Assembly: GCA_038496445.1 (NCBI GenBank)
Contig: JALMLS010000486.1
Coordinates: 1-64,000 of the forward strand
DNA: 64,000 nucleotides
Source: Trichosphaerium sp. ATCC 40318
Lineage: Eukaryota > Protista > Tubulinea
Reading direction: 5' to 3'
Shown: in pieces, positions 26,507 through 31,812 of the stretch
Layout: each line of letters opens with the position of its first letter
Position numbering within the stretch: the stretch's first letter is position 1
The notes under the pieces: model-generated
What the model was told of the DNA's origin: nothing
What the model saw: only the letters and a program-made list of their open reading frames with translations
Databases searched by the model: none
Translations under genes and position numbers: made by a program

Positions 26507-29500
26507 ATGTATGGTCTTGTTTCAAAATCGGGTGAAAAGAGTCATCTATTGAGCGTTGATGTTGATGGTATTTTTACAGGCACGTTTGGTTCTTTAAAAA
26601 CGCTAGTAGTTTACTGTATCATGTAGATGCTGTTGGTACCATCGCTGTAACGCAAGTTTATCAAAATAAGGGCTCTAACCCAATAGAATGTGTCTACTCC
26701 TTCCCTAAGCATGCGGCTATGCCAATAACTGGCTTTTCAGTAACAATTGGAGACAAGATAATAAAAGGTAACTTAATACAAACGTTTTTCTTTTTCTTTT
26801 CATAAAAAACTGTTAACTTTTTTTGAACAGGAAATATTTCTTCTAAAGAGGAAGGAAAGATTGAGTATGATATTGCTGTTGCAAAAGGTAAAGGTGGTTA
26901 CTTACTAGAACAAGTTTCAGAGGACATTGTTAAAATGTCAGTTGGTACGGAACTGGTGACTAGTCTTAAGAAAGTTTTTGAAAAATAACTTTTTTCTGAA
27001 AAAATAGGCAATCTCAATCCTGGAGAAAAAGCGTCTGTCAAAATATCTCTTTTATGTACAGCATCTTATGAACTTGGTAACACAATGCGAATTGGGGTTC
27101 CATTAACTTTTGGTCCTCGATACGGAAAGCGTAAGTGACAAAATGATTGAAATTGTGAGGAGCTCAAAATTTATTATTTGTTACAGCTGCTGACAACATT
27201 GGAACTGTGACTTATACTGACTCTTCCCAGTATGATTACAACGCTAAATTTAAGGTCAATATGCCTTGTGGCATCAAAGATGTCACATCACCATCACACG
27301 AGGTCAAGGGTACCCTAATCATAAAGTACAAAATAGTCATGGGTTTTTTTTTAGCTGTGCTTGACGCAAAAGATACTGTTGCAAATATTTCACTAAGTCC
27401 GAGTGATGGTAACAATTGGGCAGATATTATCATCCTTGTAGAAATGAATTATTCAAATGAACCTACTATTATTTGCGAGACAACACCAGATAAACACAGA
27501 GCAGTATGTATATCGCAAGTGAAGTTGTTGTTGACACACTCCATCCAGGTTTATGTTTCTTGTAAACCCAACTTCAAGACACCTAAAGATCTTGGCTTGT
27601 CACATGAGTTCATATTCCTTCTTGATAGAAGTGGTAGCATGGCAGGACATCGGTATACTTTTAAATTTACATATTTAATGAACTGACTGAGGTTGTAGAA
27701 TGAGGATGGCAAAAGAAGCACTTCAAATTTTTCTTAGAAGCTTGCCTACAGATTGTTCTTTTAACATCGTTGGTTTTGGGACTTCCCATAACACGCTCTT
27801 TGAAGAAAGCAGAGAATATAATGATGAATCTCTTCAAGAAGCTTCTAATCACGTCAAGTCACTTAAAGCCAACTTTGGTACACAAGTCGCACTTGGATTG
27901 TTTTCTCAATTTTTGTAAACAGGCGGAACGGAGATACTTGCTCCTTTGAAGGCTATAATGACAAAACATCCTAAGACTGGTCATGAAAGGGTTATCTTCC
28001 TTCTTACTGATGGAGAGGTACATAATACAAAGTCTGTTTGCGACTTTGTATTACAACACGTGGCGCACACTCGAGTTTTCACAAGCACGTTGCCTTTATA
28101 GCGATCAACTTTAACAAAAGCAATAGTCGGTGTTGGGAAAAGTGCTTCTACTGCCCTTGTGGACGGTGTAGCCAAGTCAGGTAATGGAATGCCTACTTAC
28201 GTAAGCAATACGAAGAATATGAGCACCAAGATAATTCGCCAGGTAACTACTACATAGAACGAAATGCGAAACCAAAATAGTAACTTGAAAACATAGCTCA
28301 AAAACGCGTGCACGTGTTTAACGGCCGTGTGGAAAAACCTCAAAGTCAACAGCTACCCCAACGAAGATATATCAATACCATATAGTCCAGGGGATACTAT
28401 ATCTGTACTAGGATTAGTAGAAAGCGACGAAGACTTAGAGTACAAATAACTTAATCAGATTTATTTAACTAGTGTTTAGGCATGCATCTTTGGAGCTTTG
28501 TACAACTTCACTCCCAGCCCAAACGTATGAAATAAGCCTCAAGAATGCATTACATACAAATGGGATGCACATACATCAACGGAGTGTTCATGTTATGTTG
28601 CCTTTCAGAGAAAAAAGCGAAATAGTTGATAACAGTTTGAAATACCAGATACTAACAAAATACACTTGCTTTGTGGCAGTTGGTCAAGAGAAGAAAACTG
28701 TCAATGGTCAAACTACACAAGTTGATATCCCTCTACCACTTCTATCCGCCCGTCCACAACAAAGAGCATCTAACTCCGCAGGAGTGTCTGTATCTCGTGG
28801 CGGTAATCGCTTCCGTGAAAGCAGTGTGGTAAATAGGAAGTTAGTTACCTTTATTTACTAATCAATTATTTCTAGTGTACCATTGGCGCATCTTTCCATT
28901 ATAGTACTGTTAAGCTTGGAGATGGGAAAACTATGAAATCTCAGTTTTGGGTAAGGAGCTAGAGCAACCACTAAGCACTATTTTCTAAATTTTTTTGTAC
29001 TAGGATACAGCAGGCCAGGAGCGATATAACTCACTAGCTCCAATGTATTATCGAGGAGCAACGCTTGCAGTAATATGTTACGATGTTACAGATGAGGATT
29101 CGTTTATCAGAGTAGATCATTGGCTAGCCGAAGTAACACGTGGCTCAAATTCTGCCATAATCCTTGTTGGAAACAAAGTACGTATTTCTGACGTGACAAC
29201 AAACAATAAAAGGATTAAAATTACAATATAGGTTGACTTGAAGGATGATCGTGAAGTCAGTTATACACGTGCTTTGAACTATGCCAATAAAAACGATGTT
29301 TCCTTTTTTGAAGTTTCAGCGAAAACAATGGAAGGATTAGATCAGCTAGTGTCAATCATGTACCAAGGTACTAACATCACCGTACTTTCGGCTTTACCCC
29401 TCCTTTATATCTATGCTTACTTACCTGTCCATACAGAGGCATACCTTGCTATTGATTCACCCGACAAGGATATCAAAAGTACGTCATTCTTTTTTTGGAA

Positions 29501-30242
29501 TTGTGATGAGCGTTTTTTTTTCAGTTGTTTATTTTTTTTGTAGTTGTATTAGTTGGAGAGCAAGGTGTCGGTAAAACCACTATTGAGCAGCAAATCTCTA
29601 GTTATCGTGTCGATTTGACAGAATTTTGTAAGAAAAATCCTAAGCGGAGTCAACCAACAAACAAGCAGCAGCCAATCACAGAAAACAATCAAGAAAATAG
29701 CGGGTTTTTTGGATATATTGCATCCGCTTTTGGCTCTTTTTTTGGAGCAAGTCAATCAGTAGAGCAACCAAACACAGCCTCAGAGCCAAAAAAACAACTT
29801 AAAAGATCATATAAAACCCCAACACGTCAACATACACAACAATCTGCAAGTACAGATACAAAAAAAATAAACAAGAAAGAAGTAATTAATGTGATGGACT
29901 TGATCATGTTACAAAAGGCAGATGGTACTTGGGATTTAACAGATACATTTGCTAAATGTATGTTGACTACCAAAGAAGCATTATTCAAAGCAATACCGCC
30001 TGAGGTACAAATAACAATTACATTATATTTTCTCCAAACTTTTTTCTCAATGTACTTTTTAGATGTCATCAAAAGAAAGGCTTTGGGCAACATTGCTTGC
30101 TATCACATACCTCGAATCTATTGAGACTGAAAAAGAAGCTAGACAGTTAGTTATATCAAAGGCAAAGGTTCATATATCATTATATAGTAATTGTAGTATG
30201 CACGCTAGAACCTTTCTGAATTTATGACAGGCAAAACACTAG
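26507..30242 (+). CDS. VWA5A-like VIT-VWA protein with an inserted circularly permuted Rab-like GTPase domain (last exon uncertain)
   Basis: VIT (TQVYQN...PIECVYSFP...GNLNPGE), VWA with MIDAS (FLLDRSGSM...LLTDGEV...FTIGVG), ILTKYTCFVAV, Rab motifs G2-G5 then G1, and the family C-terminal LIMLQKADGTWDL...LWATLLAITYL. Confidence 0.88.
28802..29610 (+). other. Circularly permuted Rab5-like GTPase domain (G2-G3-G4-G5-G1) within the VIT-VWA gene
   Basis: CTIGASF (28876), WDTAGQE (D at 29004), GNK/VD (29172-29237), EVSAK (S at 29316), then KIVLVGEQGVGKTT (P-loop 29555-29578); all joined in frame by GT-AG introns. Confidence 0.85.
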
Positions 30243-30619
30243 CTTTAAAATTTCCTGAAATAAACCTCAATGGCGTTTCCATTTACTTGCGTATCACCTT
30301 CTACCATTGCAGTGCCTTCAATACCAAGTCTTGAAAGGGCACGTTGCGTTTATTAGACCCACATTTAAAAGTTGCTGCAGCCTTGATAAACCCAATTAAA
30401 ACTTGACAGTAAATACAAAAATCGAACAATTTTTTTTTAATACTTTTTCGACATCGTCAACGTACTGGTTGAGTGAAAGTAATGACTATATTACACGTAC
30501 TAAATGCCTATATAGTAACTGAAGTACCATTTACCTTAATAGTACGGCCTCCAGCAAGTACCATAAGAAAAAAGAAATACGAAATTGCAAAATAACTGTA
30601 GCTTCATTTGTATTCCTTC

Positions 30620-31812
30620 TTACATCCATTTGAGTTCAACTACTAGCAATTTATGATCTGTAACCTTCTCTGCATCTATTTGAGTACATGTACTATTATC
30701 CCAGTCAATTCTCTTTGCTATATCTTGACTTATCCAAATGTAATCAATGCGTGTACTATATCTGCATGTTTTAGCATCAATATCCTTCTTTTCAGGATTA
30801 AGACATTTCCAGCAATCCACAAACCCTCTTCCTTTCATAAACTGTGTAACATCTGTTCTTGGAGGCTCCCAACCTTAATTAAACATCAGAAAACAAATAC
30901 AAAAGAGGAACAAAGTAGTACAGGTAAAAAAAACTAAAAAAAATGATTAAATAATGACCACAAAGCCATATACTCACCAGACATATTTCTTCTATCTACA
31001 ATAGTATCTTCCCAAAACCTTCAAACAAAGAGAGATAATTGTAAGTTCTCTCAAAGATGCTTATTATTTAAACAGTTTCAAGCACAGAAAAATGACTCAA
31101 ATGTTTTTGGACAGAGTTGTCACGTGATTGTCACATGTCATCAAAAAAAAAAGTCAGCGTACTCATCTGTGTAATCTTCTCTTGTCAGGGCATTAAAATC
31201 TCCAAGTATTATAGCTGGACCTTTGACCATATCCAAGATTTTTTTGATTTGAATCAATCGAACATTTTCGTCTTTGTGACATAAATGTGTCACAACAATG
31301 TCTCCAATTTCATGTTTAATTATCGTAGCATTACGCGTTTCCTTCCCAGGGACCTTTTGCGAGGAGTATCAACAAAGATAAGACGAATTTCAGTTAAAAA
31401 ACAAAGGAACAGCCTTGTGGTTCTTGTAATAAACGTACCTCTAGTTTAATGCTTTCCCACGCACTCACGATATCTCCTTTGATTATAAAAGCGTTTCCAA
31501 GCGTAGGAGAGTCTCCTGGTCCAAAATATGGCTTATAGGCTTGGCCCAACGCCGCAGCTATGCTCAGTCAATACAATATAGATGTAGTAGTAGTTACAGA
31601 AGCTTTCTGGCGTTGGCATGTAAGTTTGTCGCGGATTCTTTACAACCTACGCTAAATAAGTTAATATATCTCTCAGTTAAATCACTGACCTCTTGTAAAC
31701 CTATAATGTCGATATTTAACGGTTTTAGCTTTGCGACAAGTCCTTTCTCATTAATCTTCCATTCATCATCGCTCCACGCGTGTACGTTCCACGAGGCAAT
31801 ACTTAACGTCAT
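30620..31812 (-). CDS. Endonuclease/exonuclease/phosphatase (EEP) family protein
   Basis: Spliced IASWNVH...DIIGLQE...VTHL...ILGDFNA...RIDYIW...TDHKLLVVEL. Confidence 0.9.

Follow-up and report, generated by a model that had tools for sequence, protein, structure and literature searches.

We report here that a 64,000-nucleotide stretch of the Trichosphaerium sp. ATCC 40318 genome (positions 1 to 64,000 of contig JALMLS010000486.1, hereafter the window) encodes a Rab-like GTPase whose motifs are read in an altered order, with G1, the P-loop, placed behind G5. We consider it probable, at roughly 0.78, that this is a real, expressed and circularly permuted GTPase domain from the Rab5 group, which we term cpRab, with the order G2-G3-G4-G5-G1 and with GTP binding and hydrolysis as predicted activities. 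The host of the domain is a Vwa1/VWA5A-like VIT-VWA protein, and one mRNA carries both. The same permutation is present in an unrelated environmental transcript, P0049.

In the spliced reading, the domain runs from an equivalent of Ras Phe28 (in NRF) through G2 (CTIGASF), G3 (WDTAGQE), G4 (GNKVD) and G5 (SAK), and then reaches G1. Helix alpha5 is followed by a 12-residue linker, EAYLAIDSPDKD, and by IKIVLVGEQGVGKTTIEQQISS, which supplies strand beta1, the P-loop (GEQGVGKT) and helix alpha1; an initial annotation of the window had described a complete beta1-GxxxxGKT-alpha1 unit behind alpha5 and had estimated this linker at about 10 residues, close to the length observed. At the other end of the domain, the entry stretch aligns without gaps to the portion ...gefkefqestig of a Rab5 hidden Markov model (HMM), and its Phe stands seven residues ahead of the switch I Thr, like Phe28 of Ras. 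The break falls exactly between alpha1 and this Phe28 equivalent, with nothing missing and nothing duplicated: all secondary-structure elements, nucleotide-binding residues and catalytic residues occur once. The G motifs and the catalytic Gln, which had been said to be retained in full, are indeed all there, as GEQGVGKT, the Thr of CTIG, DTAGQE, GNKVD and SAK.

The exon order is borne out by RNA. The five introns of the domain are all GT-AG (28829-28875, 28951-29003, 29178-29231, 29368-29436 and 29479-29543), and contigs derived from spliced RNA in two public runs, X1 and X2, cross every one of them. The fourth of them lies inside the linker interval 29367..29478 listed in Table 1, in which base 29367 is the last base of the preceding exon and a small linker exon occupies 29437-29478. 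One X2 contig of 1,934 nt, 100% identical to the window, opens at the 5' end with a template-switch oligo, which marks it as cDNA; it runs unbroken from 27306 to 29779 with all introns removed (domain joints 28827/28875, 28949/29003, 29177/29232, 29365/29435 and 29478/29544), passing from the VWA domain through G2-G3-G4-G5 to the P-loop exon with no additional exon. Run X1 shows identical joints, carried by a variant of 95-99% identity. The spliced contigs show no exon that would separate the VWA/middle exon from the G2 exon, and no second GxxxxGK[ST] was found in six frames of the 64-kb window, the sole match being at 29555. A P-loop exon upstream of the domain was considered as a candidate and is ruled out by the spliced contigs together with the single Walker A of the window.

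Several claims of the initial annotation can be judged on these data. Its five GT-AG introns are all spanned by contigs from both runs; the lack of beta1 and P-loop ahead of switch I is upheld by the contigs, which hold no upstream exon, and by the one Walker A; and the nesting of the GTPase in a single polypeptide with VIT-VWA follows from the X2 contig, which joins VWA to P-loop. Across 28700-29950, where a check by RNA had been suggested, the contigs display no upstream P-loop exon, and the X2 contig carries Rab and VWA parts in one mRNA.

The whole gene occupies 26507..30227 on the + strand, with 18 exons, introns of 38-69 nt and a 945-aa product ending in ...ARTFLNL (stop codon at 30225-30227). 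Introns from 27504 onward are backed by cDNA contigs. The 5' part, 26507-27305 (the first ~800 nt), has no RNA cover in X1 or X2, and its model is based on Pfam VIT and VWA_3 matches to exons. The encoded domains follow one another as VIT, VWA with a metal ion-dependent adhesion site (MIDAS), the end of the conserved core, cpRab, a low-complexity linker and a C-terminal tail. The MIDAS elements comprise DRSGS at 27624-27641, GGT, and TDGE at 28000-28017. Within the VWA domain, the intron at 28085-28126 is of the GC-AG type, an unusual class of splice site, and both runs confirm its removal. The GTPase is placed beyond TKYTCFVAV, which corresponds to the 'TxYTSFVAV' motif of relatives and is the last motif that the protein has in common with its VIT-VWA relatives; the tether, a variable and disordered part, starts 3' of it. 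The N-terminus (MYGLVSKSGEKSHLL...) is by inspection not hydrophobic, unlike those of the bacterial-type proteins P0241 and P0242, and by inspection only the host protein appears to be cytosolic and to have no signal peptide. No Cys motif is found at the C-terminal end of the 945-aa protein. The tail contains one intron, whose joint (30002/30061) is seen in run X1. The tail had been described as a VWA5A-type C-terminal domain (CTD), and in this the position and the short motif Q[KN]ADGT[WF] do fit a CTD, whereas similarity over its length is wanting: the tail has no Pfam match, and against the VIT-VWA relative P0243 BLAST returned E 1.4.

Sequence comparison connects the domain with Rab5. In P0001, a second Trichosphaerium copy described below, the Pfam Ras profile matches residues 238-375 (profile positions 22-159, E 2e-41), upstream of the P-loop. 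Among canonical proteins, Rab5/RHN1 come nearest, with ~50% identity along the G2-G5 part, two-thirds of the query. Among solved structures, human Rab5A matches best (E 9e-36), and in that comparison a second stretch puts the P-loop segment on Rab5A residues 7-23. A local Rab5 HMM built from 115 hits aligned in two parts: positions 35-172 took up the core, at 173.5 bits, and positions 12-31 the P-loop segment, at 11-15 bits (E 1.5e-5 for the segment by itself). This split of the HMM, 35-172 and then 12-31, agrees with the claim of a new permutation order opened between alpha1 and switch I. When the P-loop segment was shuffled, 19 of 20 controls added at most 1 bit and the other ~3 bits, while the genuine segment contributed ~7 to 11 bits. 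The Pfam profile of RsgA, a permuted GTPase, bridges G4-G5-G1 at E 1e-6 with 26-29 bits, below the cut-off of 30.

In a tree, the domain falls in the Rab5/22 group (Shimodaira-Hasegawa-like approximate likelihood ratio test 85), on a very long branch and with other Rab subfamilies thinly sampled. The Rab5/22-group identity that had been claimed is supported by the Rab5A match, the ~50% identity to Rab5/RHN1 and a Rab5-type switch II. Taken together, cpRab resembles canonical Rab5, Rab22 and Rab21 in its G2-G5 region, in the same switch II signature and in the overlay of its predicted core (root-mean-square deviation 1.6-2.0 Å), and it differs from them in its permuted order with G1 after G5, in having neither a hypervariable tail nor a C-terminal Cys (CC/CXC) prenylation motif, in its location inside a 945-aa protein and in the length of its branch.

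To the domain we applied AlphaFold2 (AF2), with natural tandem-Rab proteins as bridging rows of the alignment. The resulting model is a single domain in which the Ras fold is complete, with six strands and five helices (mean predicted local distance difference test, pLDDT, 81.9; predicted template modelling score, pTM, 0.80). The relocated strand (model residues 153-160) and helix (166-175) have pLDDT 85-91, while the first 15 model residues, just ahead of the domain, are below 50. In a control without alignment rows for the P-loop segment, strand and helix were still built (pLDDT 73 and 60, respectively; pTM 0.71). Solved Rab5 structures overlay model residues 8-148 with a deviation of 1.6-2.0 Å and Z 15-16, and a predicted 'circularly permutated Ras protein 1', a member of the cpRAS family discussed below, overlays model residues 34-179, from G3 through G1, at a template modelling (TM) score of 0.65. 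In these models the relocated segment would sit in the beta1/P-loop slot, and the cpRAS overlay is the best evidence that we obtained for this. A superposition on Rab5 had been proposed as a check in the initial annotation: the core stands up to it over residues 8-148, and the predicted placement of the P-loop comes from the cpRAS overlay.

Searches for the same topology among AFDB clusters and in the ESM Atlas returned canonical Rabs, one cpRAS and A0A2G8JZ34, apparently a sea-cucumber model. The latter entry (AlphaFold DB, 385 aa, 'Ras-related protein SEC4') overlays our model from beta2 through the relocated P-loop with its residues 204-384 (TM 0.69-0.72); judging from its predicted structure, it may represent a further case of G2..G1 order, or else a gene model wrongly joined within a tandem array of Rabs.

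The second Trichosphaerium copy, P0001, comes from MMETSP0405 (Trichosphaerium sp. ATCC 40318, Amoebozoa) as an incomplete protein of 495 aa. It has the same motif order and is 94% identical to residues 351-843 of the window protein. The nucleotide differences of the X1 variant match exactly the amino-acid differences of P0001, and in places within 27600-30000 X1 contains the form identical to the window as well, which shows that two diverged gene copies are expressed in the same culture. Between the copies, identity is 99% in the VWA domain, 98% in the middle part, 93% in cpRab and 89% in the linker, the fastest-evolving part. Within the domain we counted ~10 non-synonymous and at least 7 synonymous differences, giving a ratio of non-synonymous to synonymous rates (dN/dS) of roughly 0.3-0.5, compared with ~0.8 in the linker; these ratios are rough, as differences near contig ends are unlisted. 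All three sequences, the window copy, P0001 and P0049, keep motifs G1-G5 intact, apart from TIS in place of TIG in P0049.

P0049, which was picked out among Rab matches, is a 239-aa protein from JGI sample 3300012469 (contig L001, 1,009 nt; L001:56-775), with G1 after G5. Its open reading frame is intron-free, open at the 5' end and terminated by a stop 23 codons after the P-loop. Its product and the window protein align co-linearly for 185 residues, through the junction, at 39% identity (E 3e-41). The two share the motif order, alpha5-beta1 linkers of similar length and exit motifs that resemble each other (SS..DL[ST]E[FL]); P0049 differs in having no C-terminal tail, in showing no VIT-VWA ahead of the domain (the 5' end being open), and in retaining, where the ancestral P-loop stood, a decayed but recognisable copy. 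This remnant, GGQGEGKV (Rab5 HMM positions 17-34), lacks a hydrophobic beta1, its alpha1 is shorter by four residues, and the intact downstream copy covers HMM positions 12-34. The decayed ancestral P-loop suggests that the permutation originated by duplication and decay. In the window protein, SAGVSVSRGG gives an ungapped match to the remnant region of P0049 at the same spacing, with the Lys lost, and may be a fully decayed relic of the old P-loop/alpha1. As called, P0049 begins with MEANGCCGASC, a Cys-rich N-terminus at which acylation might occur.

Several observations weigh against cpRab as a permuted Rab5-group GTPase that binds and hydrolyses GTP. The arrangement is known from two lineages only, one of which, P0049, comes from a single 1-kb contig; nucleotide binding is a prediction from sequence and models; the packing of the P-loop is derived by comparing predicted models with predicted models; and switch I is modelled at low confidence. 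In both trees, too, the branch of the domain is very long, and the domain evolves faster than the flanking VWA part (93% versus 98-99% identity). In addition, P0049 does not group with the two Trichosphaerium copies when the tree is built from the G2-G5 core, so there may have been one origin or two; a forced clade of all three was not rejected (approximately unbiased test, p 0.25). The faster evolution, the long branch and the low switch I confidence, which is common to both AF2 models, would also be expected of a pseudo-GTPase, in which the permutation is real and GTP binding or hydrolysis has been lost, leaving a structural or interaction module or a domain in decay; the TIS that replaces TIG in G2 of P0049 points the same way. 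Against this, the P-loop Lys/Thr, the switch I Thr, DTAGQ with its Gln, NKxD, SAK and the Phe28 equivalent are intact in both Trichosphaerium copies, the same residues have been kept in P0049 at 39% identity save for the Gly of TIG, and synonymous changes are over-represented relative to neutral expectation. We regard a pseudo-GTPase as unlikely.

Much less probable still is that the downstream P-loop lies outside the Rab fold, as a chance Walker A or as the start of a separate STAND-like NTPase, with the Rab part an N-terminally truncated relic. The P-loop exon does produce weak Pfam matches to nSTAND3 (E 0.004), AAA_5 and others, and the segment alone reaches only 11-15 bits against Rab5, but it matches the beta1/P-loop/alpha1 of Rab5 just where the core match stops (HMM 12-31 versus 35-172), AF2 packs it confidently even without alignment information, and its spacing is the same in the independent lineage of P0049. 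A separate NTPase was rejected as a candidate: low-complexity sequence without a Walker B follows the P-loop helix, and the P0049 protein stops 23 residues past the P-loop. An artefact, be it misassembly, a chimeric transcript, or separate Rab and VIT-VWA genes wrongly joined, is close to refuted. No support for it was found, although the 5' third of the gene is without RNA cover in X1 and X2; the same exon order recurs in the genome window, the 2023 run (100% identical), the 2015 run (the variant copy) and the MMETSP protein, the joints have canonical splice sites, one contig spans 27306-29779, and P0049 provides a co-linear homologue from an unrelated soil or environmental sample.

We also searched for further members of the cpRab type. 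When the P-loop/tail exon was run exhaustively by HMMER against 1.84 billion representatives, it returned P0001 only, with a query whose conserved part is short, so that distant relatives would be missed. Word-based searches with P0001 (whole, and residues 1-233) revealed no other protein of 272-866 aa with both VWA and Rab, a size range that full-length homologues of ~945 aa exceed; of VIT-VWA relatives, only three weak ones turned up. In metagenome DNA, a pattern of G5 followed by G1 at 29-38 residues yielded no cpRab in 51 loci, using a pattern that fixes some codons and fails across introns. Nearly all of the 51 were EngA/Der, two were RsgA, and some were chance matches, about half of these in canonical Rabs. 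The loci L003-L050 are mostly marine bacterial EngA/Der proteins of ~443 aa with two tandem GTPase domains, L017 and L038 being of the RsgA type, and form a useful negative control. A protein-atlas look-up of P0049 led to generic Rab clusters. Two Tulasnella proteins of ~665 aa, P0122 and P0123, contain three or four tandem Rab-like domains with very short linkers and a truncated alpha5; their source name, 'Insulin-like growth factor 2 mRNA-binding protein 3', looks like a misnomer.

Two natural permutations of the GTPase fold are relevant for comparison, and the claim that cpRab is distinct from both stands, since it shows the defining motif order of neither. The eukaryotic cpRAS (Elias & Novotny 2008, PMC2430557) has the order G3-G4-G5-G1-G2 and is opened between beta2 and beta3. 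Like cpRab, it is a permuted domain of the Ras superfamily in eukaryotes, has a short loop from alpha5 to beta1/P-loop and belongs to a large protein with a VWA-type domain. In cpRab, by contrast, G2 and beta2 stand ahead of G3 and nothing Rab-like follows alpha1. The two also differ in family, cpRAS belonging to RAS with a TIE-type G2 and cpRab to the Rab5 group with TIG and a Rab5-type switch II, and in architecture: cpRAS is N-terminal and is followed by a linker, a zinc finger and a Sec23/24-trunk VWA, whereas cpRab comes after a VIT + VWA_3 core, in the tether. The YRG/YlqF/RsgA proteins are likewise natural permutations of a P-loop GTPase with G1 after G5, but their order is G4-G5-G1-G2-G3, while in cpRab G2 and G3 precede G4, and they form an ancient ribosome-assembly family (TRAFAC) that is not Ras-like.

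As for the host, Dictyostelium Vwa1 and human VWA5A (PMC10539598) share with the window protein the lack of a signal peptide, VIT, VWA with MIDAS, the core end, a long disordered loop and a C-terminal tail; they differ in having no GTPase in the loop, a statement that covers the few close relatives compared by sequence and those treated in PMC10539598. For Dictyostelium Vwa1, the same study describes the long disordered loop after the core and a CTD docked on vWFA by AlphaFold, and its authors propose autoinhibition. In the searchable literature, outside which most subscription journals lie, we found no description of the order G2-G3-G4-G5-G1, of a permuted Rab or of the Trichosphaerium protein.

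How cpRab may have arisen can be sketched as follows. A partial tandem duplication would first have placed an extra beta1/P-loop/alpha1 behind alpha5, after which the N-terminal original would have decayed; the permuted domain, its ends now side by side, could subsequently have been taken into the tether of a VIT-VWA gene. Judging from its motifs, cpRab would bind and hydrolyse GTP as a Rab does. Having no prenyl tail, it would not undergo membrane cycling mediated by GDP dissociation inhibitor (GDI), and may serve, from within its host protein, as a module for docking or regulation that depends on the nucleotide. With its switch II of the Rab5 type, it might permit GTP-dependent docking of Rab5-type partners; alternatively, it might modulate docking of the C-terminal tail on VWA, by analogy with the docking proposed for Dictyostelium Vwa1. 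It had also been suggested that the nucleotide state mechanically controls the MIDAS-bearing module through a tether to switch I. This idea fares poorly: the domain is tethered by ~25 low-complexity residues at its entry (pLDDT <50 before the domain) and ~85 at its exit, and such long, flexible connections on either side make a rigid mechanical coupling unlikely.

A more ambitious scenario is possible, though we hold it as doubtful: cpRab would be the third natural type of GTPase-fold permutation and the first in the Rab family, a functional GTP switch formed by partial duplication with P0049 as an intermediate, and built into an autoinhibitory Vwa1/VWA5A-like tether, where it would gate the docking of the tail on VWA or recruit Rab5 effectors. 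Anand and colleagues held that a single GTPase-fold permutation was viable, a view overturned by cpRAS (as cited in PMC2430557). If our reading of cpRab is correct, a third break point exists right where alpha1 meets switch I, beside the nucleotide, and the GTPase fold would tolerate far more rewiring than assumed. With its two ends side by side, the domain would be a template from nature for protein engineers who wish to build a GTP switch into other proteins, and P0049 would give a rare view of a permutation between duplication and loss. cpRab would further be a Rab without lipid tail or GDI cycle, acting inside a scaffold protein. The human relative of this scaffold, VWA5A/BCSC-1, is poorly understood.

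The features of the gene are collected in Table 1.

Table 1. Features of the cpRab gene, with positions in the window and the evidence for each.
Feature	Position	Strand	Evidence
Exon with VIT domain core	26627..26767	+	Pfam PF08487 VIT, E 4e-8
VWA (VWA_3) domain exons, intact MIDAS	27549..28242	+	Pfam PF13768, E 3e-12; alignment with VIT-VWA proteins P0241-P0243
GC-AG intron, 42 nt, in VWA domain	28085..28126	+	joint 28084/28127 in contigs of X1 and X2
End of conserved VIT-VWA core, TKYTCFVAV	28655..28681	+	alignment with P0241-P0243
Entry into GTPase: SAGVSVSRGG, then NRFRESSV with Phe matching Ras Phe28	28775..28828	+	Rab5 HMM alignment begins at NRF, profile position 35
Exon with switch I/G2 (CTIGASF), beta2-beta3	28876..28950	+	spliced contigs, Rab5 HMM, AF2 model
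Exon with G3 (DTAGQE, catalytic Gln), switch II, G4 up to GNK	29004..29177	+	Pfam Ras, E 1e-18, profile positions 54-113
Exon with G4 end (VD), G5 (SAK, 29316-29324), helix alpha5	29232..29366	+	Pfam Ras, profile positions 114-154
Alpha5-beta1 linker (EAYLAIDSPDKD plus IK)	29367..29478	+	joints 29365/29435 and 29478/29544 in both runs; model loop between helix 132-146 and strand 153-160
Relocated beta1, P-loop G1 (GEQGVGKT, 29555-29578), alpha1, exit YRVDLTEFCKKN	29544..29638	+	Rab5 HMM 12-31; Rab5A residues 7-23; pLDDT 85-91; only Walker A in window
Low-complexity linker, ~85 residues, toward C-terminal tail	29639..29881	+	sequence composition
C-terminal tail (LQKADGTW..., WAT..)	29882..30227	+	one intron, 30005-30062; X1 cover to 30220

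Just downstream of the cpRab gene, at 30300-31500 on the minus strand, there appears to be a second intron-containing gene in tail-to-tail orientation.

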